This document shows, piece after piece, positions 23,981-30,066 of a stretch of 64,000 nt of DNA. The first letter of the stretch is position 1; each line of letters opens with the position of its first letter. Source of the stretch: Trichosphaerium sp. ATCC 40318 (taxonomy: Eukaryota > Protista > Tubulinea); assembly GCA_038496445.1 (NCBI GenBank), contig JALMLS010000612.1, positions 434,001-498,000 of the forward strand. Reading direction: 5' to 3'. Made by a program: the position numbers and the translations under genes. The notes under the pieces were generated by a model that searched no databases, had not been told where the DNA came from, and was given only the letters and a program-made list of their open reading frames with translations.

Positions 23981-24128
23981 AGAATCATTACGTGAAACTC
24001 AAATGGTCTGGTGTGGATGTCTAGTGCTGGAACCTATGCAAAAAAACCTGTAAAACGAGTGATCTCTGGTATCTTTCTTTTCAGTAGAACTTGTGGGCCT
24101 TATACATTTACATTTATTCTTTGTGGCA

Positions 24129-27100
24129 TTACAACTTGAATTCTATCACTTCGGCACCCATTTCATTGTATTCAGATGCGCTAACACAAAAGTCCATGAA
24201 ATTTGGTTTAGATGCAAACTTGCTTCCACCCATCCATGCCAAGTATTCTCTACTCCCGTGAGCACGTACTGATACTGTTTCTGAAGGAAATACAGCCTTC
24301 ATTTCTGATTCCAAACGAGCAGCAAAACCTACAAAACGGGTTAAAAACCACGTGTTTTCGTTCATAAAAGGTTGCTTGCCACTTAATCTTGTTGTTCCGC
24401 CTGCCAATACAATATTGGCTAAAAGTTGCTTTCTTACATCTTTATCTGATTGTGAAATACTCTTTCTTAACATATGTTGAATAGCAGTAAACTCTCCTTC
24501 CATACCTGCAAACAGGTGTTAGCAATTCAAAAACCAAAACAAACTAAATCAAAAGAAAAAGGTAAAAAACTCTTACCAATGATTGACGGATCAAAGAGTA
24601 TCTCAGGTGCCTGGATGGCCTCTTTCGCAATCATAACTTTTTGTCCATCAGGCATATCAAAAGGTAGTTTTATTGGGTCAGTCTTCATCTCCTTAAAACC
24701 ACAAGATAAGAAAATGACGAAACTAGTACACAAACAAAAAAGAACAAACCTTTTCGTATTCTAAAGCAACACGACAGTAAGTTTCTTTTATATCTCTAAC
24801 AATCCGCATCTCTGAACTAGTTGTAAATTCTAAATTAAACCGAATCAGCAACCTGTTAAAAACAAGCAAAGAGTGACTTGTAAAGCAAAAAAGAAAAAGT
24901 ATCTCAAGTAACTTCGTAACAGCAAACACCAACGTACTGCTTCCAGCGGTGCCTAGTAGCTTAGCCAAGTACATGTCAATATCATGACCTCCCAAATTCA
25001 AACGATAACAAGCTTGTGGTAAATAATAACTATCATAGATAGGAATCGCATGAGAACATCCATCACCAATGTCTACAAAACAAATTAGAGTCAGCAGACT
25101 TAAGGATGGAGAATATCTTTACCTAATACAACACCAGTAGTACTACCAAATGCTGTCAAAGCAAGTACACCTTGTGTCGCTATATACAAACCAGGCACAT
25201 TGTACTTTTCAAAAAAGATTTCAGCCATTTTTTTCCTATTTTCTATCCGGTTTAATGGTGGATCTGTAACCAACAACTACAACACCAACAGTCAATAGCG
25301 ATCAATAAGAATTCATTCAAAAGAAAATAAAGCAAACAACGTACAGGATAATCTGTGGGCTTTAACAGAAGCTCTGTTTTATATGTGTAGTCAATCAAAC
25401 GCTCATAATCATCCCAATCCTTTACAAATCCTCTTTGAATTGGTCTGCTAAGTTCAAGAATACCACGTCTCTCTTGTGCTTCCTGTTTAATCATTAACAT
25501 CACTAACACTAGTAGAAAATCCGTAGATACTTACGTTGCCAACATAGAACGCTCTCATGTCTTCAGTGCTCATAACACGCTCAACAAGGGGTGTTCCAAT
25601 AATTGTTGGGAAAGAAACAGTAGGTAATGTATCACCTGCTAACCCAGCTTTTGTTGTTCCTGATCCAAAATCTATGACAACTGCATTGTGTTTAACAGGT
25701 TTTCCTTCATCTTGTACAATATTCGTAGGTTCTTCTGGCGAAGGTAAAACAGGTTGAACATCTTGCTCTTGTGGTTTATCATCCCAATTATTCACACCAC
25801 GTGTGGAATGTGCCCATATCTCTTCCATCATATCTAACTCATCTATACCTGTATCACCTCCTTCCACTAATACGCTGGTGTTATTTTTATATAACTAAAA
25901 CAGTTTCTAAAGGTACCAGTAGGTGTAACAGGCGCCGGCATGTGAGAATTAAATTCGAGTCCAGGATTCGAAAATTGAGGCTTAAATGTAGAGATAGCGC
26001 TACCTATAACTTGCAGTACGCGCCCTGTCCAATTTCCCTCTCGTTGAAGAACGCCTTCAACATGAACTAAGCTTCCATCTACAGAGGACCAAGTAAGTTT
26101 ACATCAATGAACTCAAGAAAAGTCTTACCTTTTGCGTTGTTTAAGAAATGATTGTTGATAACAATCTTTTTTGATAGGTCACGTGGGTGAGGTACAAATG
26201 CGTTGCCAAATCTATCTACGGTTATCCTTGTCTTCGTTTCAACACGACCTCTATAAACCAAGAAATAAGAACCAAGTGACTTAAAAATTAATAAAAGCCT
26301 CGAACCTTTCTACAACTGATAAAACTTTCCCAATATGAAGACCCAAGTTTTTCTTTACAACAGCTACTGAAACCATATCATAATTTTCTGCGCCATTAAG
26401 CTCTTCGAAAGGGATAAATACAGTTTGATGCGTTCTACAGGGAAGAATTAATCAAAGAAGTAGTTTTAGAATTCAAAGTGTACATTGGATGCTCTAGGAA
26501 TCCTTTGCCGTCAGACTCCACAGTTAGTAGCCCAGTAATCTCTTCGGCTTTGAAAGCTGGTTTCTTTGGCACGACTTGAACTATTCTTCCGGACATTTTA
26601 CCATCCGCTCGATTATGTAATGCCACAACAACAATATCACCTAAAGACACAAACTATGAACTTTCATAAAAAAACAAAAAAGGGTGCTAGCATACCTGCT
26701 TTAGCTCCATTCAAGTCATTTGGAGAAATATATACTGCTTTTTTGATTTTATTGGTGTCATCAATAACCCAAAAGTTGCCTTGCTTATCTTGTGCCAAGC
26801 GCCCCTTCATCAAATCAGGAAAACAACTAAACAAAAATCTTCACTTTGACGTACTTGCATTGTCTTCTCTGGGGGCTTATTCCTCTCAGAAGCTGTATTA
26901 TAAGATGTATCAATAATACCCACAACCTTTAAAAAATGATCAGAATAGGAAAGCCAATATAAAACTGCTTTCAACAACTTACTTTACCAGAACGTTTACC
27001 ATCTGTACGATTATGTAATTCTACATTAACACGGTCACCGTCTTCTGCAAGACTACGATCACGAGGCGCAATGTATATTGGTGCGCTACGACTATTCTTC

Positions 27101-28655
27101 TCCTCAATAGCCCAAAAATGTCCAGCTTTGTCCTTTTTCAATAAAGCTAGGAGAATTTAGAAAAACAAAGTACAATGAAATGAGCACCTGTCAATTTTAC
27201 TGCTGGTAAGAGTAAATTATTATCAGCTCCTGTATCGTCAACATCTGTGCTAACAAGTTTTGCAGCTGCTCTCTCAACAATAGCGCCAACCTTTCCAGAT
27301 AACTTTCCATCAGTCCTTTGTGAAAAGTTACCAATACAAAAAAAAACCTCGTGCTTACCTTGTATGTAATAGTACCATTACTCTATCACCCGCTTCAGCA
27401 CCTCCTCTATCTTGAGGTGCAACAAATACAGGTCCAGGCAATGCTAAACGAAATGAGCATAAACTAAGCACGTGAAAACTAAAAATAACTAACCTCCTCC
27501 AGGAAGTTCACCGCTAATAATATAATCGTTACACCAATAGTTCCCTGACATATCGTATGCCAAAATACCATTCACACTACCAGCAACATGTGGGTCGCTA
27601 GATACAGGAATGGGCGTTCTACAGAGATTTTGTTAAATTTATACTCACCAACAGATTTAGAATAAGAGGCATTAAAATACCTGTGTTGGCTGTTGAATTC
27701 TACGCTTGTGCTTGGATCTGGGAACTCAAACTTTGACGTCTTTTTTGGTTCTACTGTTTTTGGTTGCACTGCGGGTTTGGGCGTGCTGTCATCCTTTGGT
27801 TTGCTCCCTGGTACACTTGGAAGATCTAGTGAAGGTTCCTAACTGACGTTAGCTGTCAGGCACTACAACACGTGAGATTACTTTGCCAGGAGCCATTGGT
27901 GCTTCCCATGGGATTTCGTGTTTGTTAGCAATATTTGACAGGTAGTAATTTACTAATCCTTTGTCAGGAAGCCTCCTTGATAAAGTTTCTACAATCTTTA
28001 TGTGTGTTAGTGTACTTTAAAGAACGATGTGCCAAAGACGTCACCTTTTTGTTCACGCAACAGCTTTTAACGCATTCGTTCGGAAACTCTTTACCATACT
28101 TAGCAAGGAACATTGTGACAGCCTAACCGGCAATAAGTTGAAAGTGTAACATAATTTTTTTTGTACTTTTGTTAGTTCTGGCACGTTCTCTAAATGAGGC
28201 GTTGAGTATATAACACTGCATATAGCCTCTTTAATATCGAGAGGGCAGGATCTACGATTTGATTGGTTACTAACTGAAATAAAATTATGTAAAATTTTTC
28301 GTGTACTTTTGAGCTACTATGATATCCATGCGTGCTACTATAGCCTCAACATACAAATCAAGCTTATTGTAAATTTCTATCATGTATTCTTCATGTATGA
28401 CCGTTATGATCTTACAACGGTGTTATTTAACGCAACACAATTATGTACCTTTATTCTAGCTTGCGCTTCCTTATTTTCAGCCAATAACCCAGCAACTTCC
28501 CTTTTACTTACTGAAACTAGCTCCGTTTTCTTTCTTTTATGTAATCGTATGCGATTTAGAGCCATACGCAATACCATAACGCTGAGAACAATTTTACAAA
28601 AAAAAACAACGTAACAACCATACCATTTTGCGCCACTAAAGCGTTTTGCAGACAT
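24129..28655 (-). CDS. Ist1 domain + 5 cold-shock/OB (RNase II/R CSD-like) repeats + actin-related domain fusion protein
   Basis: Ist1: [46 protein letters not shown]; OB repeats such as [37 protein letters not shown]; actin [32 protein letters not shown]; junctions between domains checked in frame. Confidence 0.85.
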
Positions 28656-28792
28656 GTCGTCCTTCTCAAATTTATAGTTTCCTCTCACCTTTTTGAGTAA
28701 CTTTTTCTCCGGAAGTATGGGTCCATTCTATTCAAATAAAAGTGTTCGTGAAAACGAAACCATCAAATAATCACAAACCACACCAAGCAAAC

Positions 28793-30066
28793 ATGCTCGT
28801 CATCAAGTTAACATTAAACGACGACACCAGAAGACTCACTCTAGATTCAGCGCCTAGTTACGACGTTTTATCAGCTCTTACCCGCAATCTGTTTAACCTT
28901 GATCACGACAACGTTAAATTTTTCTACAAAGATGAAGAGGGAGATGTTATAAAAGTTGGCTCTGCAATGTACGTTTCGAATAAATGAATTCCACTACTCA
29001 CTATATAATCATAGTGAGCTAGAAGAAGCCGTACGACAAGTCGTTTCAGGTGAGGGGAAAACCCAAATTTTGCGACTCGCAGTTCGGGTACAGCAACAAG
29101 ATAGCTCGGTAGTAGTAGTACCAGCCGTAGCTCCAGAGCCAGAGCAAGCCAAACCAGCTCCATTACCTTCAAGCGTCCTCGTCGCCTCCTCCCTCAGGAC
29201 CTCTCAAATCACAAGAGACCTTAATTTCCTTACCACTTTGGAGGTACCGGGTTTATTGTAGAGTTATTGGGTTAATCTCTTTTTAGGCGCAATTGGCTAA
29301 CGTGTTCCGGAATATCTCATCCTTTATGCACGGCGACTACGCTATGAAAGATAAAATAGGTACGCTCTCGCGGGGTTCTGTCTTTTCACGGGCTTTTGAT
29401 TTCTTTTTTCTTTTTATTTTCAGTCTCTTACACTTTCTCTAGTAAACCTCGTTCACGACTGCAGTCAAGCCATTGGTAAAGTATCATCGAACGTAGACGC
29501 CCATGTGTTGAAGCCAATCGCCAACTTTACAACTGTTCACGCTTCCTCTTTCCAAGCTGAAATGCAAACCCTAAAGGACGAAATATCTAAGCTCCGTAAC
29601 CAATTACAAGACGAATTAACCAAAGTTGGAGGTACGCATAAAATGTGATCTCTACTCGTTGTACTAAATATTTATTGTAGAAGCCCACCAAGGCCGCAAG
29701 AATGAAGGTAAATCGTACTTTGCTCCTCTCCTCGCGCTCCAGCATTTGGCACCAAAAGTCGAAGACCCAGTAGCTGCAGCACCTGCTACCAACGAAGACG
29801 CTCCTGTTGTAGACCCAGAGGGTGGTGATGTAAGCGCTCTTTCAGACCACGAAATATCTCGCCTTCTACAACACTTTCAAATGTTGAGCGACACCCCAGA
29901 CGAAGACGAAAAAGCACCTGCTAGTACTCCAATACCTGAGAAATACCAAACTGGCGTACAAACACTCACCGACATGGGTTTTATGGATGCTGGAAGAAAT
30001 GTAAAGATGCTCGAGAAGTATTCTGGCGATGTATCCCGCGTTGTTGACGCATATTTGGGAAATTAA
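28793..30066 (+). CDS. PB1 ... UBA protein (p62/NBR1-like adaptor)
   Basis: MLVIKLTLNDDTRRL..FFYKDEEGDVI (PB1 with basic Lys and OPCA motif); C-terminal LTDMGFMDAGRNVKMLEKYSGDVSRVVDAYL (UBA). Confidence 0.85.

Follow-up and report, generated by a model that had tools for sequence, protein, structure and literature searches.

Can an Ist1 domain, an array of cold-shock OB folds and a complete actin belong to one gene, and if so, to which known protein does that gene correspond? The question arises from the minus strand of a 64,000-nucleotide (nt) window of the Trichosphaerium sp. ATCC 40318 genome (contig JALMLS010000612.1, positions 434,001 to 498,000). The window is this whole stretch, and all coordinates refer to it. 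The region around 24129-28655 is eukaryotic, rich in introns and contains ~37-40% G+C. An initial annotation, made from the sequence letters, placed one gene between 28655 and 24129 and kept one frame from Ist1 through the OB array to actin. The bounds were borne out by our splice model and assembled transcript contigs. The single frame was confirmed as well, with single contigs and an identical open reading frame (ORF) of a public protein, P0001, spanning all three parts. One spliced mRNA encodes one protein of 1078 amino acids (aa), which consists of an Ist1 core, five OB barrels on disordered linkers, and actin. We are fairly confident that the gene is the Trichosphaerium version of filactin, an amoebozoan fusion of an IST1-type ESCRT-III protein with actin, carrying five RNase R-type OB folds where two filamin immunoglobulin (Ig) repeats sit in Dictyostelium, Entamoeba, and Pelomyxa.

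The transcript contigs were obtained from X1 (an RNA-type run of 2015), X4 and X5 (both 2023), and X2 (a related organism or strain). Contigs of X1, X4, and X5 are 100% identical to the gene, and those of X2 are 95-99% identical. Spliced contigs lie on the gene in all four data sets, and the Ist1, OB and actin boundaries are all crossed. Each of the 15 listed splice joints coincides with an intron of the model, and 10 more joints were found beyond those listed. This joint support comes from assembled contigs, not from single reads.

Cold-shock OB folds between Ist1 and actin

We searched the protein with a profile built from the family. Five repeats of ~60 aa each were found at 27569-26002, each with an E-value (E) of 1e-16 to 1e-25 against this family profile, in agreement with the five repeats first read at ~25990-27560. 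On P0001, Pfam CSD2 (PF17876) scores 98.4 bits over four stretches (cut-off 26.2) and OB_RNB (PF08206) scores 50.9 bits (cut-off 24); weaker matches came from OB_HELZ2 and OB_RNR_1st. Single exons carry part of this signal. Exon 27146-26983 (repeat 2) alone matches OB_RNB, CSD2 and OB_HELZ2 weakly, and the exon of repeat 4 matches CSD2 with E = 0.0011. We also aligned 49 repeats, drawn from eight family proteins of full length and eight fragments. In the profile comparison, this 49-repeat profile matched CSD1/CSD2 of Bacillus subtilis RNase R (8cdu) with E = 7.7e-16, followed by E. coli RNase R, and DIS3, Ssd1, and DIS3L2 gave weak matches below RNase R. A language-model similarity search likewise returned N-terminal fragments of bacterial RNase R as neighbors of the array.

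Predicted structures point in the same direction. The AlphaFold2 model of repeat 3, computed from the 49-repeat alignment, is a five-stranded barrel with a predicted local distance difference test (pLDDT) score of 90.8. Foldseek places E. coli RNase R (5xgu) first, with a template modeling (TM) score of 0.83 and 29-31% identity. Next come RNase R of Mycoplasma and Bacillus, RNase II, and human Dis3L2, and generic OB folds rank lower. In the full-length model, all five repeats have the order strand-strand-strand-turn-strand-strand, with pLDDT of 70-89 and disordered linkers between them. The assignment of the repeats to the RNase II/R-type cold-shock OB domain, and their folding as OB barrels, were thus upheld by Pfam, profile and model evidence. 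A match to the RNB nuclease domain (PF00773) was found by Pfam neither in P0001 nor in any relative, and P0001 has no Pfam match to an S1 domain or a filamin repeat. A filamin or Ig identity of the repeats was rejected by the Pfam and Foldseek results. Matches to designed 'Pizza' beta-propellers (15 residues, D-x-x-G-x-x-W-V-x-D) were also rejected, as a chance motif resemblance. By profiles and predicted folds, we regard the repeats as genuine RNase II/R-type cold-shock OB folds.

The Ist1 domain was recovered with PF03398 on the exon translations. Four consecutive exons are collinear with the profile (positions 3-44, 47-76, 77-106, and 136-164), and exon 28581-28449 on its own reaches 34.8 bits against a cut-off of 33.6. 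The orthologs score 107-141 bits. Directly after the Ist1 core lies LDLPSVP, which had been proposed as a putative MIT-interacting motif (MIM) of the MIM2 type. The motif is present but not conserved: the pattern has no match in the eleven other family proteins checked. We infer only from its sequence that LDLPSVP might work as a MIM2. The 85-aa disordered linker before actin has a sole predicted helix, modeled at low confidence. It is only loosely MIM1-like, and the MIM1 arginine is missing. Stygamoeba carries DELDALW, which resembles this acidic helix.

A clear MIM1-like motif ([DE]xxLxxR[LF]xxL[KS]) lies just upstream of actin in the filamin-type proteins P0032 and P0034 and in Stygamoeba P0031, with the endings '...LLARLNSIK', '...LASRLQRLK', and '...LMARFAALS'. 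The tail of IST1 carries MIM2 and then MIM1, and in human IST1 the MIM2 upstream of MIM1 is five residues long (PMC4475061). The position of the MIM1-like motif before actin fits the IST1 order of core, linker, and MIMs. It suggests that filactin may be a complete IST1, including the MIM, with actin appended. The filactin papers examined do not mention this motif.

The actin end was claimed to be a full fold with both phosphate loops, and PF00022 agrees with that claim (Table 1). The domain shares 44% identity with a conventional actin. Of its nucleotide-site residues, all 16 that we checked are intact (D11, G13, S14, G15, K18, Q137, D154, G156, D157, G158, H161, K213, E214, G301, G302, and T303), and the adenosine motif is present along with both loops. 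Several surface positions of actin are altered, such as 305/306 and 336. Among OB-type relatives, P0009 (Copromyxa), P0011, P0017, and P0018 have a decayed ATP site, with changes at Q137, D157, G158, H161 and others, and the actin domains of these four are only 25-28% identical to actin. To judge from these residues, the actin end is a pseudo-actin in some OB-type lineages and is intact in Trichosphaerium, P0021, and P0040.

Relatives and the role of the middle module

Filactin is the IST1-like protein of Dictyostelium, a hybrid found in intranuclear actin rods and, with spastin, in the late mitotic spindle (PMC5225641, PMC8932920; further filactin literature, PMC2441452). Its Pfam architecture, 'Ist1-filamin-filamin-actin', is known only from Entamoeba and Dictyostelia (PMC5859476). 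The initial annotation had given filactin as Ist1, filamin repeats and actin, which is correct (PMC5859476, PMC8932920). Proteins of Acytostelium subglobosum, Pelomyxa schiedti, and Mastigella eilhardi, which we used as representatives in place of D. discoideum filactin, agree with it. They are confirmed as filamin type together with two environmental proteins, and all named filamin-type species are Evosea. P0032 and P0034 score 120-140 bits against PF00630 (filamin), and no OB repeats were found in the filamin-type proteins tested (including P0032, P0034, and P0051). Two Pelomyxa schiedti proteins of the filamin type, P0032 and P0047 (KAH3763526.1 and KAH3761220.1), bear the NCBI name 'P-type ATPase', evidently an annotation error.

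The OB type, with 4-6 repeats per protein, is represented by Trichosphaerium, Copromyxa protea, and five environmental proteins. The six relatives with Ist1, OB/CSD and actin are P0009, P0011, P0017, P0018, P0021, and P0040; neither these nor P0001 match PF00630. This Pfam comparison with filamin-type proteins bore out the idea that OB repeats take the place of filamin repeats. Trichosphaerium and Copromyxa both belong to Tubulinea (PMC5850466). Stygamoeba regulata P0031 has Ist1 and actin separated by a linker with no recognizable domain. Given limited sampling, the middle module thus appears to follow the major clades. P0017 is encoded by one uninterrupted ORF of 998 codons (L001:3001-5997) on a 41.6-kb contig, versus 24 introns in the Trichosphaerium gene.

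Representatives of the three major amoebozoan clades sampled all retain Ist1 paired with actin but differ in the middle module: Evosea have filamin Ig repeats, Tubulinea have RNase R-type OB folds, and Stygamoeba has nothing. This natural domain-swap experiment suggests that Ist1 and actin together form the conserved functional core. The OB array represents RNA-handling domains of a ribonuclease multiplied without the nuclease. The initial statement that no description of such a protein exists stands for the literature: full-text searches on filactin, and on Ist1 and actin combined with either filamin or OB_RNB, returned no description of an Ist1-OB-actin protein. It does not stand for databases. 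P0001 and its automatic Pfam domain list were already in public collections, and there are six further such proteins. We regard the OB type as a variant, not described before, of amoebozoan filactin, itself a little-studied protein.

By analogy with these known proteins, the two ends and the middle may have separate tasks. The Ist1 end would join ESCRT-III polymers and recruit MIT-domain enzymes (Vps4, spastin), as IST1 does. The actin end would bind ATP and engage actin filaments, in line with the reports that place Dictyostelium filactin in actin rods and at the late mitotic spindle. The OB array would be a variable middle module, setting reach or spacing and the choice of partners.

For the array itself, we see about an even chance that it is mainly structural or protein-binding, as 'beads on a string' equivalent to the filamin rod. 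A spacer is favored by the interchangeability of the middle module and by the repeat number, which varies across relatives. Mixed repeat charge and a modified RNP1 site favor it as well: the family signature D-x-x-G-N-x-W replaces the G-F-x-F of RNase R, so that the first RNP1 aromatic of RNase R (GFAF) corresponds to a conserved Asn in the repeats (GNxW), and a family-specific Asp is near-invariant.

RNA binding is no more likely than a role as spacer or adaptor. We hold it rather unlikely, though worth keeping in view, that the array is a working module for single-stranded RNA, which would bridge RNA or ribonucleoproteins to ESCRT-III/IST1 membrane remodeling and actin. The initial annotation had suggested a link of this kind, and this is its strongest form. 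In its favor, the repeats are members of the RNase II/R CSD family, known mainly from ribonucleases, and aromatics are conserved at RNP1-like and RNP2-like positions; Trp is kept at the second position of the RNP1-like site and Phe/Tyr in the 'F-I-P' strand that comes next. Three of the five Trichosphaerium repeats (2, 3, and 5) are basic, with isoelectric points (pI) of 9.2-10.4, and 4-6 copies would give avidity. However, the 49 family repeats have a median pI of 6.8 and a median net charge of 0, with 16 acidic and 21 basic, and the RNP1 exchange to Asn with the added invariant Asp also argues against RNA binding. Sister lineages have filamin Ig repeats or no domain in that place, so the conserved job of the protein would need no RNA. 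The share left by these two roles goes to a function that is neither structural or protein-binding nor RNA-binding. If the array does bind RNA, then RNA, ESCRT-III and actin would be linked in one molecule; no such coupling in one polypeptide turned up in the literature searched.

Several points weigh against reading the gene as a filactin with an exchanged middle. The MIMs that would link it to Vps4 and spastin are weak here, LDLPSVP being unconserved and the pre-actin helix being without the MIM1 arginine. For the joints of the first six exons, the support comes from length bookkeeping and from the alignment of orthologs. Maximum-likelihood trees of the actin and Ist1 domains, computed without Arp or canonical IST1 outgroups, are star-like with long branches. 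Independent Ist1-actin fusions in the OB and filamin types are possible by these trees.

We consider it improbable that the OB-type protein is a second, convergent IST1-actin fusion in Tubulinea and not a module swap in one ancestral gene. Neither the actin nor the Ist1 tree has a supported clade joining the fusion proteins, and the Trichosphaerium actin domain shares 44% identity with conventional actin versus 38-40% with the Pelomyxa and Mastigella fusion actins. On the other side, the order of N-terminal Ist1 and C-terminal actin was seen only in Amoebozoa among the named proteins recovered (PMC5859476), and it occurs in all three major amoebozoan clades sampled. The ancestral state could be the plain Ist1-linker-actin of Stygamoeba. 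That all Ist1-actin fusions go back to one origin is the parsimonious reading of these sequences, not a demonstrated one.

Transcripts and gene model

That the long frame is an artefact of adjacent Ist1, OB and actin genes, or of a mis-assembly, joined by hand splicing has next to no probability left and is refuted as far as assembled contigs can show: the first splicing was done by eye, contigs can merge adjacent genes and the X4 contig (4427 nt) runs beyond 28800, but each domain boundary is crossed by spliced contigs of three data sets and the related strain, the X5 contig, which has the length of one mRNA, begins at a cDNA adaptor, the 2012 transcriptome ORF is identical over 957 aa, and seven orthologs share the architecture, including the one with an uninterrupted ORF.

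The splice model of the filactin-like gene was built by a codon-usage-weighted search with manual curation and then checked against the contigs. A minimal-intron splice search was also run, and its model was rejected as intron-retaining. The X5 contig (3322 nt) opens with a 20-nt cDNA adaptor at 28686 and stops at 24095, and the 3' end lies at 24095/24096 in X4 and X5 alike. The 5' untranslated region (UTR) of 31 nt, the coding sequence of 3237 nt and the 3'UTR of 34 nt add up to 3302 nt, the length of the X5 contig once its adaptor is taken off. This match needs the acceptor at 28251. Because X5 was 18 nt shorter than the model upstream of 27838, the acceptor was moved from 28269 to 28251, which shortens the product by 18 nt. 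The resulting product agrees with orthologs (e.g., Copromyxa '...AAQTSCPLDIMEQ...') and with the spacing of the Pfam Ist1 profile. The start ATG at 28655 is the first ATG downstream of the transcript start, and the stop codon is at 24131-24129. An ATG at 28726 was rejected as the start, as it lies outside the transcript, whose cDNA 5' end is 28686.

The contigs revealed a GC-AG intron (24379-24329) that the splicing by eye had read through. This intron is spliced out in the X2, X4, and X5 contigs and in P0001. A second database entry of the protein, isoform P0048, keeps its 51 nt, so that the actin domain gains 17 aa downstream of GGTTRLS. The insert directly follows the GGTT adenosine-binding motif.

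P0001 is a 957-aa ORF from the transcriptome MMETSP0405 (2012; taxid 498012, Trichosphaerium sp. ATCC 40318). It was found among 1.84 billion cluster representatives with exon 27146-26983, most of repeat 2, as the query. It is identical to residues 122-1078 of the model and begins at an internal Met because its transcript contig is 5'-truncated.

Table 1. Features of the filactin-like gene and the evidence for each; coordinates refer to the window.
Feature	Coordinates	Strand	Residues	Evidence
Whole transcript, 25 exons, 24 introns of 38-108 nt	24095..28686	-		X5 adaptor, X4/X5 3' ends
Coding sequence, 3237 nt	24129..28655	-	1078 aa	splice model, contigs, P0001
Exons 1-5	28655-28624, 28581-28449, 28410-28307, 28251-28167, 28122-28045	-		
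Exons 6-10	27995-27882, 27838-27681, 27618-27494, 27443-27359, 27315-27188	-		
Exons 11-15	27146-26983, 26926-26855, 26804-26696, 26640-26484, 26434-26306	-		
Exons 16-20	26250-26129, 26078-25917, 25866-25535, 25482-25345, 25276-25123	-		
Exons 21-25	25072-24938, 24829-24750, 24691-24577, 24505-24380, 24328-24129	-		
Ist1 (ESCRT-III-like) domain	27909..28655	-	1-173	PF03398
LDLPSVP, proline-rich, MIM2-like	27809..27829	-	186-192	read in sequence
OB repeat 1, 7-aa loop insertion	27273..27569	-	252-319	profile E = 9.8e-21; five strands in full-length model
OB repeat 2	26909..27188	-	348-408	profile E = 3.7e-24
OB repeat 3	26567..26804	-	427-487	profile E = 2.5e-25; best Pfam OB_RNB/CSD2 stretch
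OB repeat 4	26308..26533	-	499-557	profile E = 1.2e-16; five strands in full-length model
OB repeat 5	26002..26231	-	565-624	profile E = 4.9e-17; five strands, pLDDT 83-89, in full-length model
Acidic amphipathic helix (10 residues), pre-actin linker	25814..25843	-	661-670	full-length structure model
Actin domain	24135..25690	-	712-1077	PF00022, 349 bits, profile positions 4-408 of 410
GC-AG intron, 51 nt, in frame, sometimes retained	24329..24379	-		transcript contigs
AATAAA polyadenylation signal	24113..24118	-		sequence; ~20 nt upstream of contig 3' ends 24095/24096

The extension of the X4 contig reaches ~1.1 kb past the 5' end of X5. Read-through, an alternative 5' end, residual DNA or an assembly merge with the neighbor gene could account for it. 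That neighbor is divergent, on the plus strand, with a transcript start at ~28765 (marked by a cDNA adaptor) and a PB1 domain at 28742-28984 (PF00564, E = 2.6e-07). Its later exon at 29746-30063 has, by eye, a UBA-like end without a Pfam match. The cDNA 5' ends of the two genes, 28765 and 28686, are only ~80 bp apart, and therefore a very short common bidirectional promoter region lies between them.

Comparison with known systems

One of the closest known systems is filactin (Fia in Dictyostelium; also Entamoeba, Pelomyxa, and Mastigella). The Trichosphaerium protein shares with it the N-terminal Ist1, the long linker, the C-terminal actin with an intact ATP site, the amoebozoan distribution, and a size of ~800-1100 aa (PMC5859476, PMC2441452, PMC8932920). 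It differs in the middle, where filactin has two filamin Ig repeats and Trichosphaerium five RNase R-type OB folds. The pre-actin MIM1-like motif is clear in the filamin type, whereas it is degenerate in the Trichosphaerium protein.

With IST1 and yeast Ist1, the Vps4 regulator and partner of CHMP1B and spastin, it shares the PF03398 core followed by a proline-rich linker with an LPxVP-type motif. IST1 ends in MIM2 and MIM1 (PMC4475061), whereas the Trichosphaerium protein continues for ~900 residues through the OB array and actin, and the canonical C-terminal MIM1 is not recognizable in it.

The CSD1/CSD2 domains of RNase R, RNase II, DIS3, and DIS3L2 have the same fold as the OB repeats and detectable sequence homology to them, with bacterial RNase R as the best match. 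Unlike these enzymes, the Trichosphaerium protein is without the RNB catalytic and S1 domains, and it has five tandem copies rather than two. With conventional actin, the C-terminal domain has the full fold in common. In contrast to conventional actin, it sits behind ~710 residues and can take up an optional 17-aa insertion through intron retention.

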